From positions 1-9,812 of the forward strand of contig CBFFRP010000508.1 in assembly GCA_965644295.1 (NCBI GenBank): a stretch of 9,812 nucleotides of DNA, written 5' to 3'. Below are positions 1 through 9,812 of the stretch, piece after piece. A model generated the notes under the pieces. It worked only from the letters and a program-made list of their open reading frames with translations, had not been told where the DNA came from and ran no database searches. Numbering within the stretch: position 1 is the stretch's first letter; the number at the start of each line of letters is the position of its first letter. The stretch is from Paraphysomonas bandaiensis. Its lineage: Eukaryota > Protista > Chrysophyceae. The position numbers and the translations under genes are program-made.

Positions 1-39
1 ATCATCAGCAAAGGAGCAGATATCACTATAGGAGACAGA
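1..39 (+). CDS. ANK exon 1 (partial) IISKGADITIGDR
   Basis: Followed by GTAAGT at 40-45; same 3' end as exon 10. Confidence 0.85.
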
Positions 40-3000
40 GTAAGTAACCCCCCTATACATACATATACAGTGATATACATACATATACAGTGATATACAT
101 GCATATACAGTGATATACATACATATACAATGATATACATACATATACAGTGATATACATACATATACAGTGATATACATACATATACAGTGATATACGT
201 ACATATACAGTGATATACATACATATACAGTGCTAAGAGGGCTCATGTGATGTCATTGTTATTGTTTTATAGGATGGTTGGACAGCTCTTCACTATGCTG
301 CTCGTAAAGGTCACAGAGATACATGTGAATATCTCATCAGCAAAGGAGCAGATATCACTATAAGAGACACTGTAAGTAACCCCCCTATACATACATATAC
401 AGTGATATACATGCATATACAGTGATATACATACATATACAGTGATATACATACATATACAGTGATATACATACATACATACATATACAGTGATATACAT
501 GCATATACAGTGCTAAGAGGGCTCATGTGATGTCATTGTTGTTGGTTTATAGAGGGGTTCTACAGCTCTTCTCTTGGCTGCCTCTGGAGGTCACAGAGAT
601 ACATGTGAATACCTCATCAGCAAAGGAGCAGATATCACTATAGGAGGCAGAGTAAGTAACCCCCTATACATACATATACAGTGATATACATACATATACA
701 GTGATATACATACATATACAGTGATATACATACATATACAGTGCTAAGAGGGCTCATGTGATGTCATTGTTGTTGGTTTATAGAGGGGTTCTACAGCTCT
801 TCACTTGGCTGCCTCTGGAGGTCACAGAGATACATGTGAATATCTCATCAGCAAAGGAGCAGATATCACTATAGGAGGCAGAGTAAGTAACCCCCCTATA
901 CATACATATACAGTGATATACATACATATACAGTGATATACATACATATACAGTGATATACATGCATATACAGTGCTAAGAGGGCTCATGTGATGTCATT
1001 GTTATTGTTTTATAGGATGGTTGGACAGCTCTTCACTATGCTGCTCGTAAAGGTCACAGAGATACATGTGAATATCTCATCAGCGAAGGAGCAGATATCA
1101 CTATAAGAGGCAGAGTAAGTAACCCCCCTATACATACATATACAGTGATATACATGCATATACAGTGATATACATACATATACAGTGATATACATGCATA
1201 TACAGTGATATACATACATATACAGTGATATACATACATATACAGTGATATACATACATATACAGTGATATACGTACATATACAGTGATATACATACATA
1301 TACAGTGCTAAGATATTTTTTATAGGATGGTTCTACAGCTCTTCACGAGGCTGCCTCTGGAGGTCACAGAGATACATGTGAATATCTCATCAGCGAAGGA
1401 GCAGATATCACTATAAGAGACGATGTAAGTAACCCCTCTATACATACATATACAGTGATATACATACATATACAGTGATATACATACATATACAGTGATA
1501 TACATGCATATACAGTGATATACATACATATACAGTGATATACATACATATACAGTGATATACATACATATACAGTGATATACGTACATATACAGTGATA
1601 TACATACATATACAGTGCTAAGAGGGCTCATGTGATGTCATTGTTATTGTTTTATAGGATGGTTGGACAGCTCTTCACTATGCTGCTCGTAAAGGTCACA
1701 GAGATACATGTGAATATCTCATCAGCAAAGGAGCAGATATCACTATAAGAGACACTGTAAGTAACCCCCCTATACATACATATACAGTGATATACATACA
1801 TATACAGTGCTAAGATATTTTTTATAGGATGGTTCTACAGCTCTTCACGAGGCTGCCTCTGGAGGTCACAGAGATACATGTGAATATCTCATCAGCGAAG
1901 GAGCAGATATCACTATAAGAGACGATGTAAGTAACCCCTCCATACATACATATACAGTGATATACATACATATACAGTGATATACATACATATACAGTGA
2001 TATACATGCATATACAGTGATATACATACATATACAGTGCTAAGATATTTTTTATAGGATGGTTCTACAGCTCTTCACTATGCTGCCTCTGGAGGTCACA
2101 GAGATACATGTGAATATCTCATCAGCGAAGGAGCAGATATCACTATAAGAACCAATGTAAGTAACCCCCCTATACATACATATACAGTGATATACATGCA
2201 TATACAGTGCTAAGAGGGCTCATGTGATGTTATTGTTGTTGTTTTATAGGATGGTTCTACAGCTCTTCACAAGGCTGCCTCTGGAGGTCACAGAGATACA
2301 TGTGAATATCTCATCAGCAAAGGAGCAGATATCACTATAGGAGACAGAGTAAGTAACCCCCCTATACATACATATACAGTGATATACATACATATACAGT
2401 GATATACATGCATATACAGTGATATACATACATATACAATGATATACATACATATACAGTGATATACATACATATACAGTGATATACATACATATACAGT
2501 GATATACGTACATATACAGTGATATACATACATATACAGTGCTAAGAGGGCTCATGTGATGTCATTGTTATTGTTTTATAGGATGGTTGGACAGCTCTTC
2601 ACTATGCTGCTCGTAAAGGTCACAGAGATACATGTGAATATCTCATCAGCAAAGGAGCAGATATCACTATAAGAGACACTGTAAGTAACCCCCCTATACA
2701 TACATATACAGTGATATACATGCATATACAGTGATATACATACATATACAGTGATATACATACATATACAGTGATATACATACATACATACATATACAGT
2801 GATATACATGCATATACAGTGCTAAGAGGGCTCATGTGATGTCATTGTTGTTGGTTTATAGAGGGGTTCTACAGCTCTTCTCTTGGCTGCCTCTGGAGGT
2901 CACAGAGATACATGTGAATACCTCATCAGCAAAGGAGCAGATATCACTATAGGAGGCAGAGTAAGTAACCCCCCTATACATACATATACAGTGATATACA

Positions 3001-6000
3001 TACATATACAGTGATATACATACATATACAGTGATATACATACATATACAGTGCTAAGAGGGCTCATGTGATGTCATTGTTGTTGGTTTATAGAGGGGTT
3101 CTACAGCTCTTCACTTGGCTGCCTCTGGAGGTCACAGAGATACATGTGAATATCTCATCAGCAAAGGAGCAGATATCACTATAGGAGGCAGAGTAAGTAA
3201 CCCCCCTATACATACATATACAGTGATATACATACATATACAGTGATATACATACATATACAGTGATATACATGCATATACAGTGCTAAGAGGGCTCATG
3301 TGATGTCATTGTTATTGTTTTATAGGATGGTTGGACAGCTCTTCACTATGCTGCTCGTAAAGGTCACAGAGATACATGTGAATATCTCATCAGCGAAGGA
3401 GCAGATATCACTATAAGAGGCAGAGTAAGTAACCCCCCTATACATACATATACAGTGATATACATGCATATACAGTGATATACATACATATACAGTGATA
3501 TACATGCATATACAGTGATATACATACATATACAGTGATATACATACATATACAGTGATATACATACATATACAGTGATATACATACATATACAGTGCTA
3601 AGATATTTTTTATAGGATGGTTCTACAGGTCTTCACGAGGCTGCCTCTGGAGGTCACAGAGATACATGTGAATATCTCATCAGCGAAGGAGCAGATATCA
3701 CTATAAGAGACGATGTAAGTAACCCCTCTATACATACATATACAGTGATATACATACATATACAGTAATATACATACATATACAGTGATATACATGCATA
3801 TACAGTGATATACATACATATACAGTGCTAAGATATTTTTTATAGGATGGTTCTACAGCTCTTCACTATGCTGCCTCTGGAGGTCACAGAGATACATGTG
3901 AATATCTCATCAGCGAAGGAGCAGATATCACTATAAGAACCAATGTAAGTAACCCCCCTATACATACATATACAGTGATATACATGCATATACAGTGCTA
4001 AGAGGGCTCATGTGATGTTATTGTTGTTGTTTTATAGGATGGTTCTACAGCTCTTCACAAGGCTGCCTCTAATGGTCACAGAGATACATGTGAATATCTC
4101 ATCAGCGAAGGAGCAGATATCACTATAAGAGACGATGTAAGTAACCCCTCTATACATACATATACAGTGATATACATACATATACAGTGATATACGTACA
4201 TATACAGTGATATACATACATATACAGTGCTAAGAGGGCTCATGTGATGTCATTGTTATTGTTTTATAGGATGGTTGGACAGCTCTTCACTATGCTGCTC
4301 GTAAAGGTCACAGAGATACATGTGAATATCTCATCAGCAAAGGAGCAGATATCACTATAAGAGACACTGTAAGTAACCCCCCTATACGTACATATACAGT
4401 GATATACATACATATACAGTGATATACATACATATACAGTGATATACATACATATACAGTGATATACATACATATACAGTGATATACATACATATACAGT
4501 TATATACATACATATACAGTGCTAAGAAGGCTCATGTGATGTTATTGTTGTTGTTTTATAGGATGGTTCTACAGCTCTTCGCAAAGCTGCCTCTAATGGT
4601 CACAGAGATACATGTGAATATCTCATCAGCGAAGGAGCAGATATCACTATAGGAGACAATGTAAGTAACCCCCCTATACATGCATATACAGTGATATACA
4701 TACATATACAGTGATATACATACATATACAGTGATATACATGCATATACAGTGATATACATACATATACAGTGCTAAGATATTTTTTATAGGATGGTTCT
4801 ACAGGTCTTCACGAGGCTGCCTCTGGAGGTCACAGAGATACATGTGAATATCTCATCAGCGAAGGAGCAGATATCACTATAAGAGACGATGTAAGTAACC
4901 CCTCTATACATACATATACAGTGATATACATACATATACAGTGATATACATACATATACAGTAATATACATACATATACAGTGATATACATGCATATACA
5001 GTGATATACATACATATACAGTGCTAAGATATTTTTTATAGGATGGTTCTACAGCTCTTCACTATGCTGCCTCTGGAGGTCACAGAGATACATGTGAATA
5101 TCTCATCAGCGAAGGAGCAGATATCACTATAAGAGACACTGTAAGTAACCCCCCTATACATACATATACAGTGATATACATACATATACAGTGATATACA
5201 TACATATACATTGATATACATACATATACAGTGATATACATACATATACAGTGATATACATACATATACAGTGATATACATACATATACAGTAATATACA
5301 TACATATACAGTGATATACATGCATATACAGTGATATACATACATATACAGTGCTAAGATATTTTTTATAGGATGGTTCTACAGCTCTTCACTATGCTGC
5401 CTCTGGAGGTCACAGAGATACATGTGAATATCTCATCAGCGAAGGAGCAGATATCACTATAAGAGACACTGTAAGTAACCCCCCTATACATACATATACA
5501 GTGATATACATACATATACAGTGATATACATACATATACATTGATATACATACATATACAGTGATATACATACATATACAGTGATATACATACATATACA
5601 GTGATATACATACATATACAGTGATATACATACATATACAGTGATATACGTACATATACAGTGATATACATACATATACAGTGCTAAGAGGGCTCATGTG
5701 ATGTCATTGTTATTGTTTTATAGGATGGTTCTACAGCTCTTCACGAGGCTGCCTCTAATGGTCACAGAGATACATGTGAATATCTCATCAGCGAAGGAGC
5801 AGATATCACTATAAGAGACGATGTAAGTAACCCCTCTATACATACATATACAGTGATATACATACATATACAGTGATATACATACATATACAGTGATATA
5901 CATGCATATACAGTGATATACATACATATACAATGATATACATACATATACAGTGATATACATACATATACAGTGATATACATACATATACAGTGATATA

Positions 6001-8298
6001 CGTACATATACAGTGATATACATACATATACAGTGCTAAGAGGGCTCATGTGATGTCATTGTTATTGTTTTATAGGATGGTTGGACAGCTCTTCACTATG
6101 CTGCTCGTAAAGGTCACAGAGATACATGTGAATATCTCATCAGCAAAGGAGCAGATATCACTATAAGAGACACTGTAAGTAACCCCCCTATACATACATA
6201 TACAGTGATATACATGCATATACAGTGATATACATGCATATACAGTGATATACATACATATACAGTGATATACATGCATATACAGTGATATACATACATA
6301 TACAGTGATATACATACATATACAGTGCTAAGAGGGCTCATGTGATGTTATTGTTGTTGTTTTATAGGATGGTTCTACAGCTCTTCGCAAGGCTGCCTCT
6401 AATGGTCACAGAGATACATGTGAATATCTCATCAGCGAAGGAGCAGATATCACTATAGGAGACAATGTAAGTAACCCCCCTATACATGCATATACAGTGA
6501 TATACATACATATACAGTGATATACATACATATACAGTGATATACGTACATATACAGTGATATACATACATATACAGTGCTAAGATATTTTTTATAGGAT
6601 GGTTCTACAGCTCTTCACGAGGCTGCCTCTGGAGGTCACAGAGATACATGTGAATATCTCATCAGCGAAGGAGCAGATATCACTATAGGAGACGATGTAA
6701 GTAACCCCTCTATACATACATATACAGTGATATACATGCATATACAGTGATATACATACATATACAGTGCTAAGATATTTTGTATAGGATGGTTCTACAG
6801 CTCTTCACTATGCTGCCTCTGGAGGTCACAGAGATACCTGTGAATATCTCATCAGCGAAGGAGCAGATATCACTATAAGAGACACTGTAAGTAACCCCCC
6901 TATACATACATATACAGTGATATACATACATATACAGTGCTCAGAGGGCTCATGTGATGTCATTGTTATTGTTTTATAGGATGGTTGGACAGCTCTTCAC
7001 TATGCTGCTCGTAAAGGTCACAGAGATACATGTGAATATCTCATCAGCAAAGGAGCAGATATCACTATAAGAGACACTGTAAGTAACCCCCCTATACATA
7101 CATATACAGTGATATACATACATATACAGTGCTAAGAGGGCTCATGTGATGTCATTGGTGTTGTTTTATAGGATGGTTCTACAGCTCTTCACTATGCTGC
7201 CTATAATGGTCACAGAGATACATGTGAATATCTCATCAGCGAAGGAGCAGATATCACTATAAGAGACACTGTAAGTAACCCCCCTATACATACATATACA
7301 GTGATATACATACTTATACAGTGATATACATACATATACAGTGATATACATACATATACAGTGATATACATACATATACAGTGCTAAGAGGGCTCATGTG
7401 ATGTCATTGTTGTTGTTTTATAGGATGGTTGGACAGCTCTTCACTATGCTGCTCGTAAAGGTCACAGAGATACATGTGAATATCTCATCAGCAAAGGAGC
7501 AGATATCACTATAAGAACCAATGTAAGTAACCCCCCTATACATACATATACAGTGATATACATACATATACAGTGCTAAGAGGGCTCATGTGATGTTATT
7601 GTTGTTGTTTTATAGGATGGTTCTACAGCTCTTCACTATGCTGCCTATAATGGTCACAGAGATACATGTGAATATCTCATCAGCGAAGGAGCAGATATCA
7701 CTATAAGAGGCAGAGTAAGTAACCCCCCTATACATACATATACAGTGATATACATACTTATACAGTGATATACATACATATACAGTGATATACATACATA
7801 TACAGTGATATACATACATATACAGTGATATACATACATATACAGTGATATACATACATATACAGTGCTAAGAGGGCTCATGTGATGTTATTGTTGTTGT
7901 TTTATAGGATGGTTGGACAGCTCTTCACAAGGCTGCCTCTGGAGGTCACAGAGATACATGTGAATATCTCATCAGCAAAGGAGCAGATCTCACTATAAGA
8001 AACAATGTAAGTAACCCCCCTATACATACATATACAGTGATATACATACATATACAGTGATATACATACATATACAGTGATATACATACATATACAGTGA
8101 TATACATACATATACAGTGATATACATACATATACAGTGATATACATACATATACAGTGCTAAGAGGGCTCATGTGATGTTATTGTTGTTGTTTTATAGG
8201 ATGGTTCTACAGCTCTTCACAAGGCTGCCTCTGGAGGTCACAGAGATACATGTGAATATCTCATCAGCAAAGGAGCAGATGTCACTATAAGAAACAAT
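1..8298 (+). CDS. Multi-exon ankyrin-repeat protein gene (partial, 5' end outside window; 33 exons, one ANK repeat per 99-bp exon; about 1069 aa visible)
   Basis: Every satellite unit holds a 99-bp segment between a T-rich TATAG acceptor and a GTAAGT donor. Manual translation gives G-x-TALH-x-AA-xx-GH...YLIS-x-GAD, the canonical ankyrin consensus (GxTPLHxAAxxGHxxxVxxLLxxGADxN). No stop or frameshift in any of the 32 complete exons, whereas intron lengths vary freely. Confidence 0.93.
273..371 (+). CDS. ANK exon 2 DGWTALHYAARKGHRDTCEYLISKGADITIRDT
   Basis: AG at 271-272, GTAAGT at 372; 99 bp. Confidence 0.9.
553..651 (+). CDS. ANK exon 3 RGSTALLLAASGGHRDTCEYLISKGADITIGGR
   Basis: AG/GT bounded, 99 bp. 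Confidence 0.9.
784..882 (+). CDS. ANK exon 4 RGSTALHLAASGGHRDTCEYLISKGADITIGGR
   Basis: AG/GT bounded, 99 bp. Confidence 0.9.
1016..1114 (+). CDS. ANK exon 5 DGWTALHYAARKGHRDTCEYLISEGADITIRGR
   Basis: AG/GT bounded, 99 bp. Confidence 0.9.
1326..1424 (+). CDS. ANK exon 6 DGSTALHEAASGGHRDTCEYLISEGADITIRDD
   Basis: AG/GT bounded, 99 bp. Confidence 0.9.
1658..1756 (+). CDS. ANK exon 7 DGWTALHYAARKGHRDTCEYLISKGADITIRDT
   Basis: AG/GT bounded, 99 bp. Confidence 0.9.
1828..1926 (+). CDS. ANK exon 8 DGSTALHEAASGGHRDTCEYLISEGADITIRDD
   Basis: AG/GT bounded, 99 bp. Confidence 0.9.
2058..2156 (+). CDS. ANK exon 9 DGSTALHYAASGGHRDTCEYLISEGADITIRTN
   Basis: AG/GT bounded, 99 bp. Confidence 0.9.
2250..2348 (+). 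CDS. ANK exon 10 DGSTALHKAASGGHRDTCEYLISKGADITIGDR
   Basis: AG/GT bounded, 99 bp. Confidence 0.9.
2582..2680 (+). CDS. ANK exon 11 DGWTALHYAARKGHRDTCEYLISKGADITIRDT
   Basis: AG/GT bounded, 99 bp. Confidence 0.9.
2862..2960 (+). CDS. ANK exon 12 RGSTALLLAASGGHRDTCEYLISKGADITIGGR
   Basis: AG/GT bounded, 99 bp. Confidence 0.9.
3094..3192 (+). CDS. ANK exon 13 RGSTALHLAASGGHRDTCEYLISKGADITIGGR
   Basis: AG/GT bounded, 99 bp. Confidence 0.9.
3326..3424 (+). CDS. ANK exon 14 DGWTALHYAARKGHRDTCEYLISEGADITIRGR
   Basis: AG/GT bounded, 99 bp. Confidence 0.9.
3616..3714 (+). CDS. ANK exon 15 DGSTGLHEAASGGHRDTCEYLISEGADITIRDD
   Basis: AG/GT bounded, 99 bp. Confidence 0.9.
3846..3944 (+). CDS. ANK exon 16 DGSTALHYAASGGHRDTCEYLISEGADITIRTN
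   Basis: AG/GT bounded, 99 bp. Confidence 0.9.
4038..4136 (+). CDS. ANK exon 17 DGSTALHKAASNGHRDTCEYLISEGADITIRDD
   Basis: AG/GT bounded, 99 bp. Confidence 0.9.
4270..4368 (+). CDS. ANK exon 18 DGWTALHYAARKGHRDTCEYLISKGADITIRDT
   Basis: AG/GT bounded, 99 bp. Confidence 0.9.
4562..4660 (+). CDS. ANK exon 19 DGSTALRKAASNGHRDTCEYLISEGADITIGDN
   Basis: AG/GT bounded, 99 bp. Confidence 0.9.
4792..4890 (+). CDS. ANK exon 20 DGSTGLHEAASGGHRDTCEYLISEGADITIRDD
   Basis: AG/GT bounded, 99 bp. Confidence 0.9.
5042..5140 (+). CDS. ANK exon 21 DGSTALHYAASGGHRDTCEYLISEGADITIRDT
   Basis: AG/GT bounded, 99 bp. Confidence 0.9.
5372..5470 (+). CDS. ANK exon 22 DGSTALHYAASGGHRDTCEYLISEGADITIRDT
   Basis: AG/GT bounded, 99 bp. 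Confidence 0.9.
5724..5822 (+). CDS. ANK exon 23 DGSTALHEAASNGHRDTCEYLISEGADITIRDD
   Basis: AG/GT bounded, 99 bp. Confidence 0.9.
6076..6174 (+). CDS. ANK exon 24 DGWTALHYAARKGHRDTCEYLISKGADITIRDT
   Basis: AG/GT bounded, 99 bp. Confidence 0.9.
6368..6466 (+). CDS. ANK exon 25 DGSTALRKAASNGHRDTCEYLISEGADITIGDN
   Basis: AG/GT bounded, 99 bp. Confidence 0.9.
6598..6696 (+). CDS. ANK exon 26 DGSTALHEAASGGHRDTCEYLISEGADITIGDD
   Basis: AG/GT bounded, 99 bp. Confidence 0.9.
6788..6886 (+). CDS. ANK exon 27 DGSTALHYAASGGHRDTCEYLISEGADITIRDT
   Basis: AG/GT bounded, 99 bp; synonymous ACA>ACC at codon 17; variant acceptor TTTTGTATAG. Confidence 0.9.
6980..7078 (+). CDS. ANK exon 28 DGWTALHYAARKGHRDTCEYLISKGADITIRDT
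   Basis: AG/GT bounded, 99 bp. Confidence 0.9.
7172..7270 (+). CDS. ANK exon 29 DGSTALHYAAYNGHRDTCEYLISEGADITIRDT
   Basis: AG/GT bounded, 99 bp. Confidence 0.9.
7424..7522 (+). CDS. ANK exon 30 DGWTALHYAARKGHRDTCEYLISKGADITIRTN
   Basis: AG/GT bounded, 99 bp. Confidence 0.9.
7616..7714 (+). CDS. ANK exon 31 DGSTALHYAAYNGHRDTCEYLISEGADITIRGR
   Basis: AG/GT bounded, 99 bp. Confidence 0.9.
7908..8006 (+). CDS. ANK exon 32 DGWTALHKAASGGHRDTCEYLISKGADLTIRNN
   Basis: AG/GT bounded, 99 bp. Confidence 0.9.
8200..8298 (+). CDS. ANK exon 33 (last visible) DGSTALHKAASGGHRDTCEYLISKGADVTIRNN
   Basis: AG/GT bounded, 99 bp; donor at 8299 has no recognisable downstream exon in the window. Confidence 0.88.
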
Positions 8299-8362
8299 GT
8301 AAGTAACCCCCCTATACATACATATACAGTGATATACATACATACATACATATACATACCAT

Positions 8363-8392
8363 CCTAACCCTAACTATTCGATTAGGGTTAGG
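8363..8392. repeat. Inverted telomeric junction CCTAACCCTAA-ctattcga-TTAGGGTTAGG (11-bp inverted repeat, 8-nt spacer)
   Basis: 8363-8373 is the reverse complement of 8382-8392. Confidence 0.85.
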
Positions 8393-9800
8393 GTTAGGGT
8401 TAGGGTTAGGGTTAGGGTTAGGGTTAGGGTTAGGGTTAGGGTTAGGGTTAGGGTTAGGGTTAGGGTTAGGGTTAGGGTTAGGGTTAGGGTTAGGGTTAGG
8501 GTTAGGGTTAGGGTTAGGGTTAGGGTTAGGGTTAGGGTTAGGGTTAGGGTTAGGGTTAGGGTTAGGGTTAGGGTTAGGGTTAGGGTTAGGGTTAGGGTTA
8601 GGGTTAGGGTTAGGGTTAGGGTTAGGGTTAGGGTTAGGGTTAGGGTTAGGGTTAGGGTTAGGGTTAGGGTTAGGGTTAGGGTTAGGGTTAGGGTTAGGGT
8701 TAGGGTTAGGGTTAGGGTTAGGGTTAGGGTTAGGGTTAGGGTTAGGGTTAGGGTTAGGGTTAGGGTTAGGGTTAGGGTTAGGGTTAGGGTTAGGGTTAGG
8801 GTTAGGGTTAGGGTTAGGGTTAGGGTTAGGGTTAGGGTTAGGGTTAGGGTTAGGGTTAGGGTTAGGGTTAGGGTTAGGGTTAGGGTTAGGGTTAGGGTTA
8901 GGGTTAGGGTTAGGGTTAGGGTTAGGGTTAGGGTTAGGGTTAGGGTTAGGGTTAGGGTTAGGGTTAGGGTTAGGGTTAGGGTTAGGGTTAGGGTTAGGGT
9001 TAGGGTTAGGGTTAGGGTTAGGGTTAGGGTTAGGGTTAGGGTTAGGGTTAGGGTTAGGGTTAGGGTTAGGGTTAGGGTTAGGGTTAGGGTTAGGGTTAGG
9101 GTTAGGGTTAGGGTTAGGGTTAGGGTTAGGGTTAGGGTTAGGGTTAGGGTTAGGGTTAGGGTTAGGGTTAGGGTTAGGGTTAGGGTTAGGGTTAGGGTTA
9201 GGGTTAGGGTTAGGGTTAGGGTTAGGGTTAGGGTTAGGGTTAGGGTTAGGGTTAGGGTTAGGGTTAGGGTTAGGGTTAGGGTTAGGGTTAGGGTTAGGGT
9301 TAGGGTTAGGGTTAGGGTTAGGGTTAGGGTTAGGGTTAGGGTTAGGGTTAGGGTTAGGGTTAGGGTTAGGGTTAGGGTTAGGGTTAGGGTTAGGGTTAGG
9401 GTTAGGGTTAGGGTTAGGGTTAGGGTTAGGGTTAGGGTTAGGGTTAGGGTTAGGGTTAGGGTTAGGGTTAGGGTTAGGGTTAGGGTTAGGGTTAGGGTTA
9501 GGGTTAGGGTTAGGGTTAGGGTTAGGGTTAGGGTTAGGGTTAGGGTTAGGGTTAGGGTTAGGGTTAGGGTTAGGGTTAGGGTTAGGGTTAGGGTTAGGGT
9601 TAGGGTTAGGGTTAGGGTTAGGGTTAGGGTTAGGGTTAGGGTTAGGGTTAGGGTTAGGGTTAGGGTTAGGGTTAGGGTTAGGGTTAGGGTTAGGGTTAGG
9701 GTTAGGGTTAGGGTTAGGGTTAGGGTTAGGGTTAGGGTTAGGGTTAGGGTTAGGGTTAGGGTTAGGGTTAGGGTTAGGGTTAGGGTTAGGGTTAGGGTTA
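8382..9800 (+). repeat. Telomeric repeat array (TTAGGG)236 plus TTA
   Basis: Uninterrupted TTAGGG from 8382 to 9797 (1416 bp = 236 units), G-rich strand running 5'->3' to the window end as expected for a right chromosome end. TTAGGG is the telomere motif of many metazoans, fungi and protists, so it does not identify the taxon. Confidence 0.97.
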
Positions 9801-9812
9801 AACAATACATAT

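Follow-up and report, generated by a model that had tools for sequence, protein, structure and literature searches.

An array of single-repeat ankyrin exons beside a telomeric tract in Paraphysomonas bandaiensis, with variation concentrated at concave-face codons

Introduction

How can a repeat protein keep an almost uniform scaffold and still vary strongly at its surface? This question is raised by a stretch of 9,812 nucleotides from the chrysophyte Paraphysomonas bandaiensis (assembly GCA_965644295.1, contig CBFFRP010000508.1, positions 1 to 9,812 of the forward strand), hereafter called the window. It carries a tandem array of 32 complete exons of equal length, each encoding one ankyrin repeat, and closes with a long telomeric tract. 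Differences between the exons are concentrated at codons for the concave face of the repeat, where replacement changes outnumber silent ones per site. We consider it probable that the window holds the interior of a gene or gene copy, one that belongs to a large, expressed family of binding proteins with ankyrin repeats in this marine protist. Below, the anatomy of the array and the position and rates of its variation are described first, followed by recombination among the exons, traces of the family in sequencing runs, and the status of this particular copy.

Anatomy of the array

A search with the donor sequence GTAAGTAAC returned 33 sites in the window. At 32 of them the donor is preceded by exactly 99 nt of exon, which begin directly after an AG acceptor (from 273-371 to 8200-8298, Table 1); the first donor has only a 39-nt partial exon before it, cut by the window edge. 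All complete exons are open in frame 1 and in phase 0, with no stop codon or indel across 3,168 exon bases, and they comprise 20 unique nucleotide and 18 unique protein sequences. Four different exons, compared with the Pfam Ank family PF00023, scored 31.6-46.8 bits (cutoff 21.1) over profile positions 1-33 or 2-30. Each 33-residue exon is one Pfam Ank repeat, end to end, and owing to this end-to-end alignment exon codon i can be equated with position i of Pfam and of the literature (T-A-L-H at positions 4-7). Judging from the 32 consecutive full-length repeats and from their alignment to solved chains of designed ankyrin repeat proteins (DARPins), the repeats would be expected to build a solenoid that has a concave groove.

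The splice signals are as uniform as the exons: GTAAGT stands at all 33 donors, AG at all 32 acceptors, and CTAAG is found in 31 of the 32 introns. Each intron (71-253 nt) opens with a constant head, GTAAGTAACCCC, continues with a 20-nt minisatellite, TATACATACATATACAGTGA, in 2-10 copies, and closes with a tail of one of two classes. Both tail classes start with CTAAG, a putative branch point, situated 37 or 15 nt upstream of the acceptor. Length differences between introns are multiples of 20 nt, with minisatellite portions of 39-199 nt, and variant units beginning with TATACATGCA and TATACGTACA reappear at particular intron places. An in-frame TAG lies directly 5' of every exon, and downstream the frame runs into a stop 10-30 codons (mostly 17) inside each intron, so that the coding potential depends on splicing. 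Retention of an intron would terminate the protein after any repeat, adding a short tail that begins with VSNPPIHTYTVIY. The open reading frames of the minus strand merely read through minisatellite and telomeric sequence, and an Rfam scan of 1-8380 gave no family match. The TTAGGG tract was left out of the RNA-family search, as well as of the searches of sequencing runs and sequence collections reported below.

Position of the variable codons

Across the 32 complete exons, the protein sequence of codons 13-23 (GHRDTCEYLIS) is invariant, and 12 of the 33 codons vary: 1 (D/R), 3 (S/W), 5 (A/G), 7 (H/L/R), 8 (Y/E/K/L), 11 (S/R/Y), 12 (G/K/N), 24 (K/E), 28 (I/L/V), 31 (R/G), 32 (D/G/T/N) and 33 (T/R/D/N). 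Synonymous variants number only four, at codons 8 (AAG/AAA), 10, 17 and 20. A preliminary description of the window had listed the same invariant core, the same variable codons with their alleles and the same four synonymous variants, and our recount of the 32 exons matches it throughout. It had also placed the variable codons in register with the randomised positions of DARPins. HMMER alignment of an exon to solved DARPin chains yields that same register, exon codons 31, 33, 1, 3, 11 and 12 corresponding to the DARPin positions x33, x2, x3, x5, x13 and x14, and codon 24 to z26. The 12 variable codons among the 33 include every one of the six x positions (hypergeometric p = 8e-4, or 1.9e-4 with z included).

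To assign codons to surfaces, we relied on this alignment together with the position classes derived from 7,407 natural ankyrin repeats in the same numbering (Utgés et al. 2021, PMC8415598). There, positions 1, 2, 3, 8, 11, 12, 32 and 33 are classed as concave, 4-7, 9, 10, 17, 18 and 21 as core, 13-16, 19, 20 and 22-24 as convex, and 25-31 as basal. In our array, seven of the eight concave positions vary (1, 3, 8, 11, 12, 32 and 33, with Gly2 constant), as opposed to five of the 25 others (Fisher p = 0.0012), and the variable sites are thus not scattered off the concave face. Multi-nucleotide codon differences are confined to exactly those seven concave codons. The exons have a mean identity of 90.6% in nucleotides and 84.3% in protein (pairwise mean, 1,056 residues); between repeats, protein identity reaches 94.5% outside the concave positions, compared with 52% at them. 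The variable codons outside the concave class are 24 (convex), 31 (basal), 5 and 7 (both core and rarely variable) and 28, which shows conservative singletons. The histidine at position 7 is partly exposed to the groove (PMC8415598).

Replacement and silent rates

Rates were compared by a tree-free count that is insensitive to recombination: the minimum number of mutational steps linking the observed codons was split into replacement and silent steps and expressed per Nei-Gojobori site. For the eight concave codons, 21.8 replacement steps fall on 18.8 sites (1.16 per site), and for synonymous sites of the whole exon, 5.2 silent steps fall on 22.8 sites (0.23 per site), which gives a ratio of 5.1 (p = 1.2e-4). 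When each new amino-acid allele was counted as one event, a procedure that guards against single events altering several nucleotides, the ratio was 3.5 (p = 0.007). When the neutral yardstick also took in non-minisatellite sites of the introns (72 sites, 8 steps), the two concave ratios became 8.4 and 5.8. The non-concave codons gave a ratio of 0.54.

Codon models of the Goldman-Yang (GY) type were fitted in IQ-TREE and tested against omega = 1. On the whole-exon tree, omega was 3.3 for the whole exon (p = 0.007), 8.3 for the concave codons (p = 0.0045) and 1.1 for all other codons (not significant). The C-terminal half, analysed on its own tree, gave an omega at the upper bound (p = 0.007). 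Point estimates at the concave codons exceeded 1 in every analysis, and most tests were significant. The preliminary description had proposed diversifying selection on a ligand-binding surface over a homogenised scaffold, and both the rate and the location tests support this proposal. Selection as the source of the surface diversity is thus supported, although a firm result needs the whole family. A role in immunity, allorecognition or host-parasite contact, which the description also suggested, may be one function of such a surface.

Could relaxed constraint alone produce the same picture? Under this explanation, the concave positions would simply be the least constrained ones of an ankyrin repeat, and concerted evolution would erase differences everywhere else, with no positive or diversity-maintaining selection involved. 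Positions 1, 3, 11, 12 and 33 are indeed already among the most diverse in the 7,407 natural repeats (PMC8415598), and some of the likelihood tests fall short of significance, as detailed in the next paragraph. However, relaxed constraint cannot raise replacement rates above silent ones, and the point estimates lie at 3.5-8 in every analysis. Moreover, the hypervariable codons 31-33 and 1-3 directly adjoin splice-site bases that never vary, and old differences could therefore outlast gene conversion neutrally only if its tracts ended at, or skipped, single codons. The confinement of multi-nucleotide codon differences to seven codons is also hard to reconcile with this explanation, which we regard as improbable.

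Several points nevertheless weigh against selection on a binding surface as we propose it. On its own tree, the N-terminal half gave an omega of 3.1 (p = 0.08), and the same value was obtained when the test was restricted to its concave codons (p = 0.41). The data are small (20 unique exons of 33 codons), and recombination inflates likelihood tests that assume a single tree. In some cases a difference of several nucleotides may have arisen in one event (GCTCGTAAA against GCCTCTGGA at codons 10-12 is a candidate); the step counts would then be lower, a correction that the count by allele events already includes. The intron flanks may be constrained by splicing, which makes them an imperfect neutral yardstick. 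Codons 24 and 31 vary although they lie off the concave face, and the repertoire is small, with two to four alleles per variable position. Finally, because the five positions named above are generally the most diverse ones in ankyrin repeats, overlap with the DARPin positions is expected in any ankyrin family. The DARPin mapping alone proves nothing on selection, and it is the rate test that carries the argument.

Duplication and recombination within the array

Only 20 of the 32 exons are independent, the remainder being copies that arose because multi-exon blocks were duplicated. The block E01-E02-E03-E04 (273-1114) is repeated at 2582-3424, and exon E01 occurs at six places (starting at 273, 1658, 2582, 4270, 6076 and 6980). 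Apart from duplication, the exons have recombined internally. The four-gamete test fails in 34 of 171 pairs of biallelic sites, and 12 N-half and 12 C-half haplotypes are found in 18 combinations. Furthermore, the type of intron tail co-segregates with the N-half of the following exon. This pattern fits exchange inside the invariant exon core and inside the minisatellite.

From these observations, the following mechanism can be proposed. Because each repeat is a single 99-nt exon in phase 0, any number and order of exons would stay in frame, and the product would fold as one continuous ankyrin solenoid. Concerted evolution by unequal crossing-over and gene conversion would keep the scaffold nearly identical, that is, the core, convex and basal positions along with the intron ends (donor, putative branch point and acceptor). 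The homology for such exchange may be supplied by the 20-nt minisatellite in every intron, as a putative recombination substrate, and by the invariant 33-nt exon core. In spite of such homogenisation, differences in amino acids would persist and build up at residues of the concave groove. Codons 8, 11 and 12 would place some of these on the side of helix 1 that is exposed, and codons 32-33 together with 1-3 would encode those at the beta-hairpin tips, which would be built across splice junctions. The likely cause of the groove diversity would be selection for diverse binding surfaces, and duplication, deletion and re-pairing of exon halves could generate new surfaces from a small set of cassettes.

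The age of the variants qualifies this scheme. In a McDonald-Kreitman-style comparison, rare alleles showed 10 replacement to 3 synonymous differences and common alleles 12 to 1 (p = 0.30). With no replacement excess among the young, rare variants, little or no ongoing selection is visible in the array, which is to be added to the points listed in the preceding section. The surface diversity seems to be older than the latest block duplications, and the array seems to reshuffle this diversity rather than create it.

Expression and wider variation of the family

Traces of the family were sought in sequencing runs, with coverage compared over 6590-7275 (686 nt with four exons). Two of the runs, X17 and X20 (organism labels C and E), are RNA by our guess, and two others, X6 and X3, are DNA. 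X17 and X20 cover the exons and almost nothing else: in X20 the depth is zero in all four introns, and in X17 it is 50- to 100-fold lower there. In the DNA runs X6 and X3, introns are covered more deeply than exons. X17 contains a GT..AG joint leading from 6696, the last base of one exon, to 7172, the first base of another, and several loose ends of contigs run from codon 33 of one exon directly into codon 1 of the next. Among the contigs of X17, 58 of 237 are at least 99% alike. Distinct contigs at least 90% alike number in the hundreds, which indicates that the family is large. Taken together, these runs of other organism labels, with their RNA nature guessed, support that the family is transcribed and spliced.

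The joints between exons also bear on another possibility, namely that the phase-0 exons serve as alternatively spliced cassettes, so that one locus would provide many binders in a Dscam-like manner. Every subset of exons is in frame, and the RNA-like contigs do join non-adjacent exons, at 6696 to 7172, where two exons are skipped, and at 6884 to 7180. These contigs come, however, from another organism with many paralogous arrays, where a different exon order explains the joints equally well. Joints of adjacent exons are seen too, and nothing shows a regulated choice of exons. A splicing library is in our view highly improbable.

Exon differences found in the four runs show which codons vary beyond the window. 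There are eight, at codons 8, 12, 23 (two), 28, 31, 32 and 33; seven change the amino acid, one would create a stop codon (codon 12), and none is synonymous. The stop concerns position 7013 in the exon 6980-7078, where T replaces A in 27-68% of the spanning depth in all four runs. Taken alone, this change turns AAA (Lys) into TAA. Since small indels lie next to it, at 7007-7011, a different haplotype of codons 10-12 may have produced it through misalignment; pseudo-exons or a non-standard reading of TAA are other candidate explanations. At codon 23 of the exon 7172-7270 (position 7240), contigs of other runs have AGA or AGG (Arg) in place of AGC (Ser), and the sequence at their loose ends is ..AEYLIREGA..; invariance of the core thus holds for the window and does not extend to the wider family. 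At 7270-7272, a contig of X20, from another organism, continues from the exon end into V-G-K-T-P-V-D-S-A-E.., which resembles an ankyrin repeat of the C-terminal capping kind. It would appear that a complete gene of the family ends in a distinct exon of its own, absent from the window.

Words of the window occur in runs of five organism labels and in marine metagenomes. A third or more of the 31-mers sampled from 1-8300 was found in runs of four organism codes, and several marine metagenomes, among them a hydrothermal-vent sample, account for a further 15-23%. This would mean that the organism or close relatives of it are widespread, or else that it is present as prey or contaminant in several cultures. 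No match to the 33-nt core of the exon, which is invariant in the window, was obtained in the collections of metagenome contigs and viral contigs. When one exon was scanned by HMMER against 1.84 billion representative proteins, only generic giant ankyrin proteins were returned; none of them had the GHRDTCEYLIS core, and the best single repeat among them was identical at no more than 20 of 33 residues. A 50-residue stop-free genomic frame (273-422) had no protein match.

Ends of the array and status of this copy

Features of the window are collected in Table 1. The array starts in the middle of an exon and stops within an intron shortly before the TTAGGG tract. At the junction, the 8-nt CTATTCGA is flanked by the two arms of an 11-nt inverted repeat, CCTAACCCTAA on one side and the first TTAGGGTTAGG on the other. 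The 12 non-telomeric bases that end the window are AAACAATACATA followed by T.

Table 1. Features of the window, with positions counted from its first nucleotide
Feature	Position	Strand
Partial ankyrin exon, 3' part, cut by window start (IISKGADITIGDR)	1..39	+
32 introns between exons	40..8199	+
Exon E01 (DGWTALHYAARKG..KGADITIRDT)	273..371	+
Exon E02 (R1, L7, L8; GGR end)	553..651	+
Exon E03	784..882	+
Exon E04	1016..1114	+
Exon E05	1326..1424	+
Exon E01 copy	1658..1756	+
Exon E05 copy	1828..1926	+
Exon E06	2058..2156	+
Exon E07	2250..2348	+
Exon E01 copy, opens duplicated block E01-E02-E03-E04	2582..2680	+
Exon E02 copy	2862..2960	+
Exon E03 copy	3094..3192	+
Exon E04 copy	3326..3424	+
Exon E08 (G5)	3616..3714	+
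Exon E06 copy	3846..3944	+
Exon E09	4038..4136	+
Exon E01 copy	4270..4368	+
Exon E10 (R7)	4562..4660	+
Exon E08 copy	4792..4890	+
Exon E11	5042..5140	+
Exon E11 copy	5372..5470	+
Exon E12	5724..5822	+
Exon E01 copy	6076..6174	+
Exon E13 (protein identical to E10)	6368..6466	+
Exon E14	6598..6696	+
Exon E15 (protein identical to E11)	6788..6886	+
Exon E01 copy	6980..7078	+
Exon E16 (Y11 N12)	7172..7270	+
Exon E17	7424..7522	+
Exon E18	7616..7714	+
Exon E19 (L28)	7908..8006	+
Exon E20 (V28), final exon of array	8200..8298	+
Last intron, broken inside minisatellite, no terminal exon after	8299..8363	+
Junction: short inverted telomeric piece CCTAACCCTAA, then CTATTCGA	8364..8381	.
(TTAGGG) x 236.5, then 12 non-telomeric bases to window end	8382..9800	+

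As regards this copy being a working gene, some observations speak to the contrary. The array lacks both a proper start and a proper end, and neither a first or last exon nor N- or C-terminal capping repeats were found in the window. In addition, the RNA-like evidence concerns the family, under other organism labels and in runs of guessed type, rather than the source organism or this locus. The copy may therefore be truncated, or it may be a reservoir copy.

The array might even be a dead remnant, broken from a family member, capped with telomeric repeats and amplified as a higher-order repeat; its surface-focused variation would then be genuine, though inherited from functional relatives, with no selection acting now. 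Such an explanation concerns the status of this copy and leaves the nature of the family untouched. It is favoured by the mid-exon start and by the end within an intron, where 1.4 kb of TTAGGG follow after 18 nt and no terminal exon is present, as well as by the duplicated multi-exon blocks, which leave only 20 of 32 exons unique. The roughly neutral mix of replacement and silent changes among the rare, young variants agrees with it too, and so does the cap-like last repeat in transcripts of the other organism, which is distinct and absent here. On the other hand, the 32 exons and their introns contain no stop codons, frameshifts or lost splice sites (a young remnant would look likewise), and contigs at least 99% alike occur in RNA-like runs, as in X17. 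On balance, we find a dead remnant rather unlikely, albeit a reading to be taken seriously.

Another function would also be conceivable for an array next to a telomeric tract. Rather than being a gene, it might act as a subtelomeric archive of ankyrin cassettes, donating exons to, or exchanging them with, expressed members of the family by ectopic recombination, for which the minisatellite introns and invariant cores would provide the means, possibly even somatically. An archive of this kind would be a contingency-gene system comparable to those of VSG or var genes, but made of single-repeat exons. We consider it very unlikely. An internal piece of a gene or gene copy of the expressed family thus remains our preferred reading, and the window alone represents one truncated example of that family.

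Comparison with known systems

Repeats with similar properties are known from fungal NOD-like receptors (NLRs), whose ANK, TPR and WD repeats combine high internal conservation with repeat-number polymorphism, concerted evolution and positive selection at few codons of the concave face (Dyrka et al. 2014, PMC4986451). Like the fungal repeats, which are about 85% or more identical, the repeats described here share 84% protein identity (94.5% outside the concave codons). Measured by the fungal-type criterion of more than 85% identity over at least 100 residues, the array, with 84.3%, lies at the threshold and not clearly above it. The replacement excess (ratio 3.5-8) is similarly restricted to few codons of the binding face, seven of the eight concave positions being variable. 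The fungal repeats differ in that they lie in continuous coding sequence attached to NACHT or NB-ARC domains. Here, every repeat has an exon of its own, the introns are filled with a minisatellite, no NOD domain is in view (the 5' end lies outside the window), and the source is a protist of marine origin.

In gene structure, the closest resemblance is to the ROCO-LRR and NB-ARC-TPR genes of the brown alga Ectocarpus, in which a single exon, always of the same length and in phase 0, encodes each repeat. The exons of their repeat domain undergo shuffling and duplication, and selection on this domain is diversifying (Zambounis et al. 2012, PMC3341825; for a follow-up on brown-algal ROCO genes see PMC11378527). 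In the same manner, all 32 exons of our array have 99 nt and phase 0, with conserved AG and GTAAGT at their borders, and the block copies, the six places of exon E01 and the reassorted halves testify to shuffling and duplication. Unlike in our array, where the repeats are ANK, those of Ectocarpus are LRR (72 nt) or TPR, and its introns hold inactivated and reverse-strand exons, none of which were seen in the window. Conversely, the minisatellite introns and the telomeric end of the present array are not described there.

With DARPin libraries, the array shares a constant consensus scaffold and variation at the surface of the beta-turn and helix 1, all six x positions and z being variable. DARPins are, however, synthetic; they have two or three internal repeats between fixed caps and about 17 residue types per randomised position, as compared with at least 32 repeats, two to four alleles per position and no caps in view here. 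Positions 8 and 32, fixed in the original DARPin design, are hypervariable in the array, and positions 5, 7 and 28 vary rarely. TAL effector arrays likewise consist of near-identical repeats that differ in DNA almost only at one or two specificity codons. Their repeats are bacterial, intron-less, helical units of 34 residues that read DNA bases, and they are unrelated in fold and sequence.

To our knowledge, the defence systems of heterotrophic or mixotrophic protists and their systems for recognition of prey or symbionts are almost unknown. If the selection signal is true, candidates for fast-evolving recognition proteins would extend to such protists, binding being their presumed function, and the array could supply natural repeat variants for binder design. 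Ankyrin repeats would then also join the class with one exon per repeat. The array combines surface hypervariability of the fungal ANK type with an exon-per-repeat structure of the brown-algal type, a combination for which our literature searches found no description in ankyrin repeats. A unicellular marine eukaryote would, on this condition, have arrived by evolution at the protein engineers' design for DARPins, namely a constant ankyrin scaffold with variation at the surface only and in-frame shuffling of single repeats, as previously reported in nature for the repeats of fungal NLRs and the LRR/TPR exons of brown algae.

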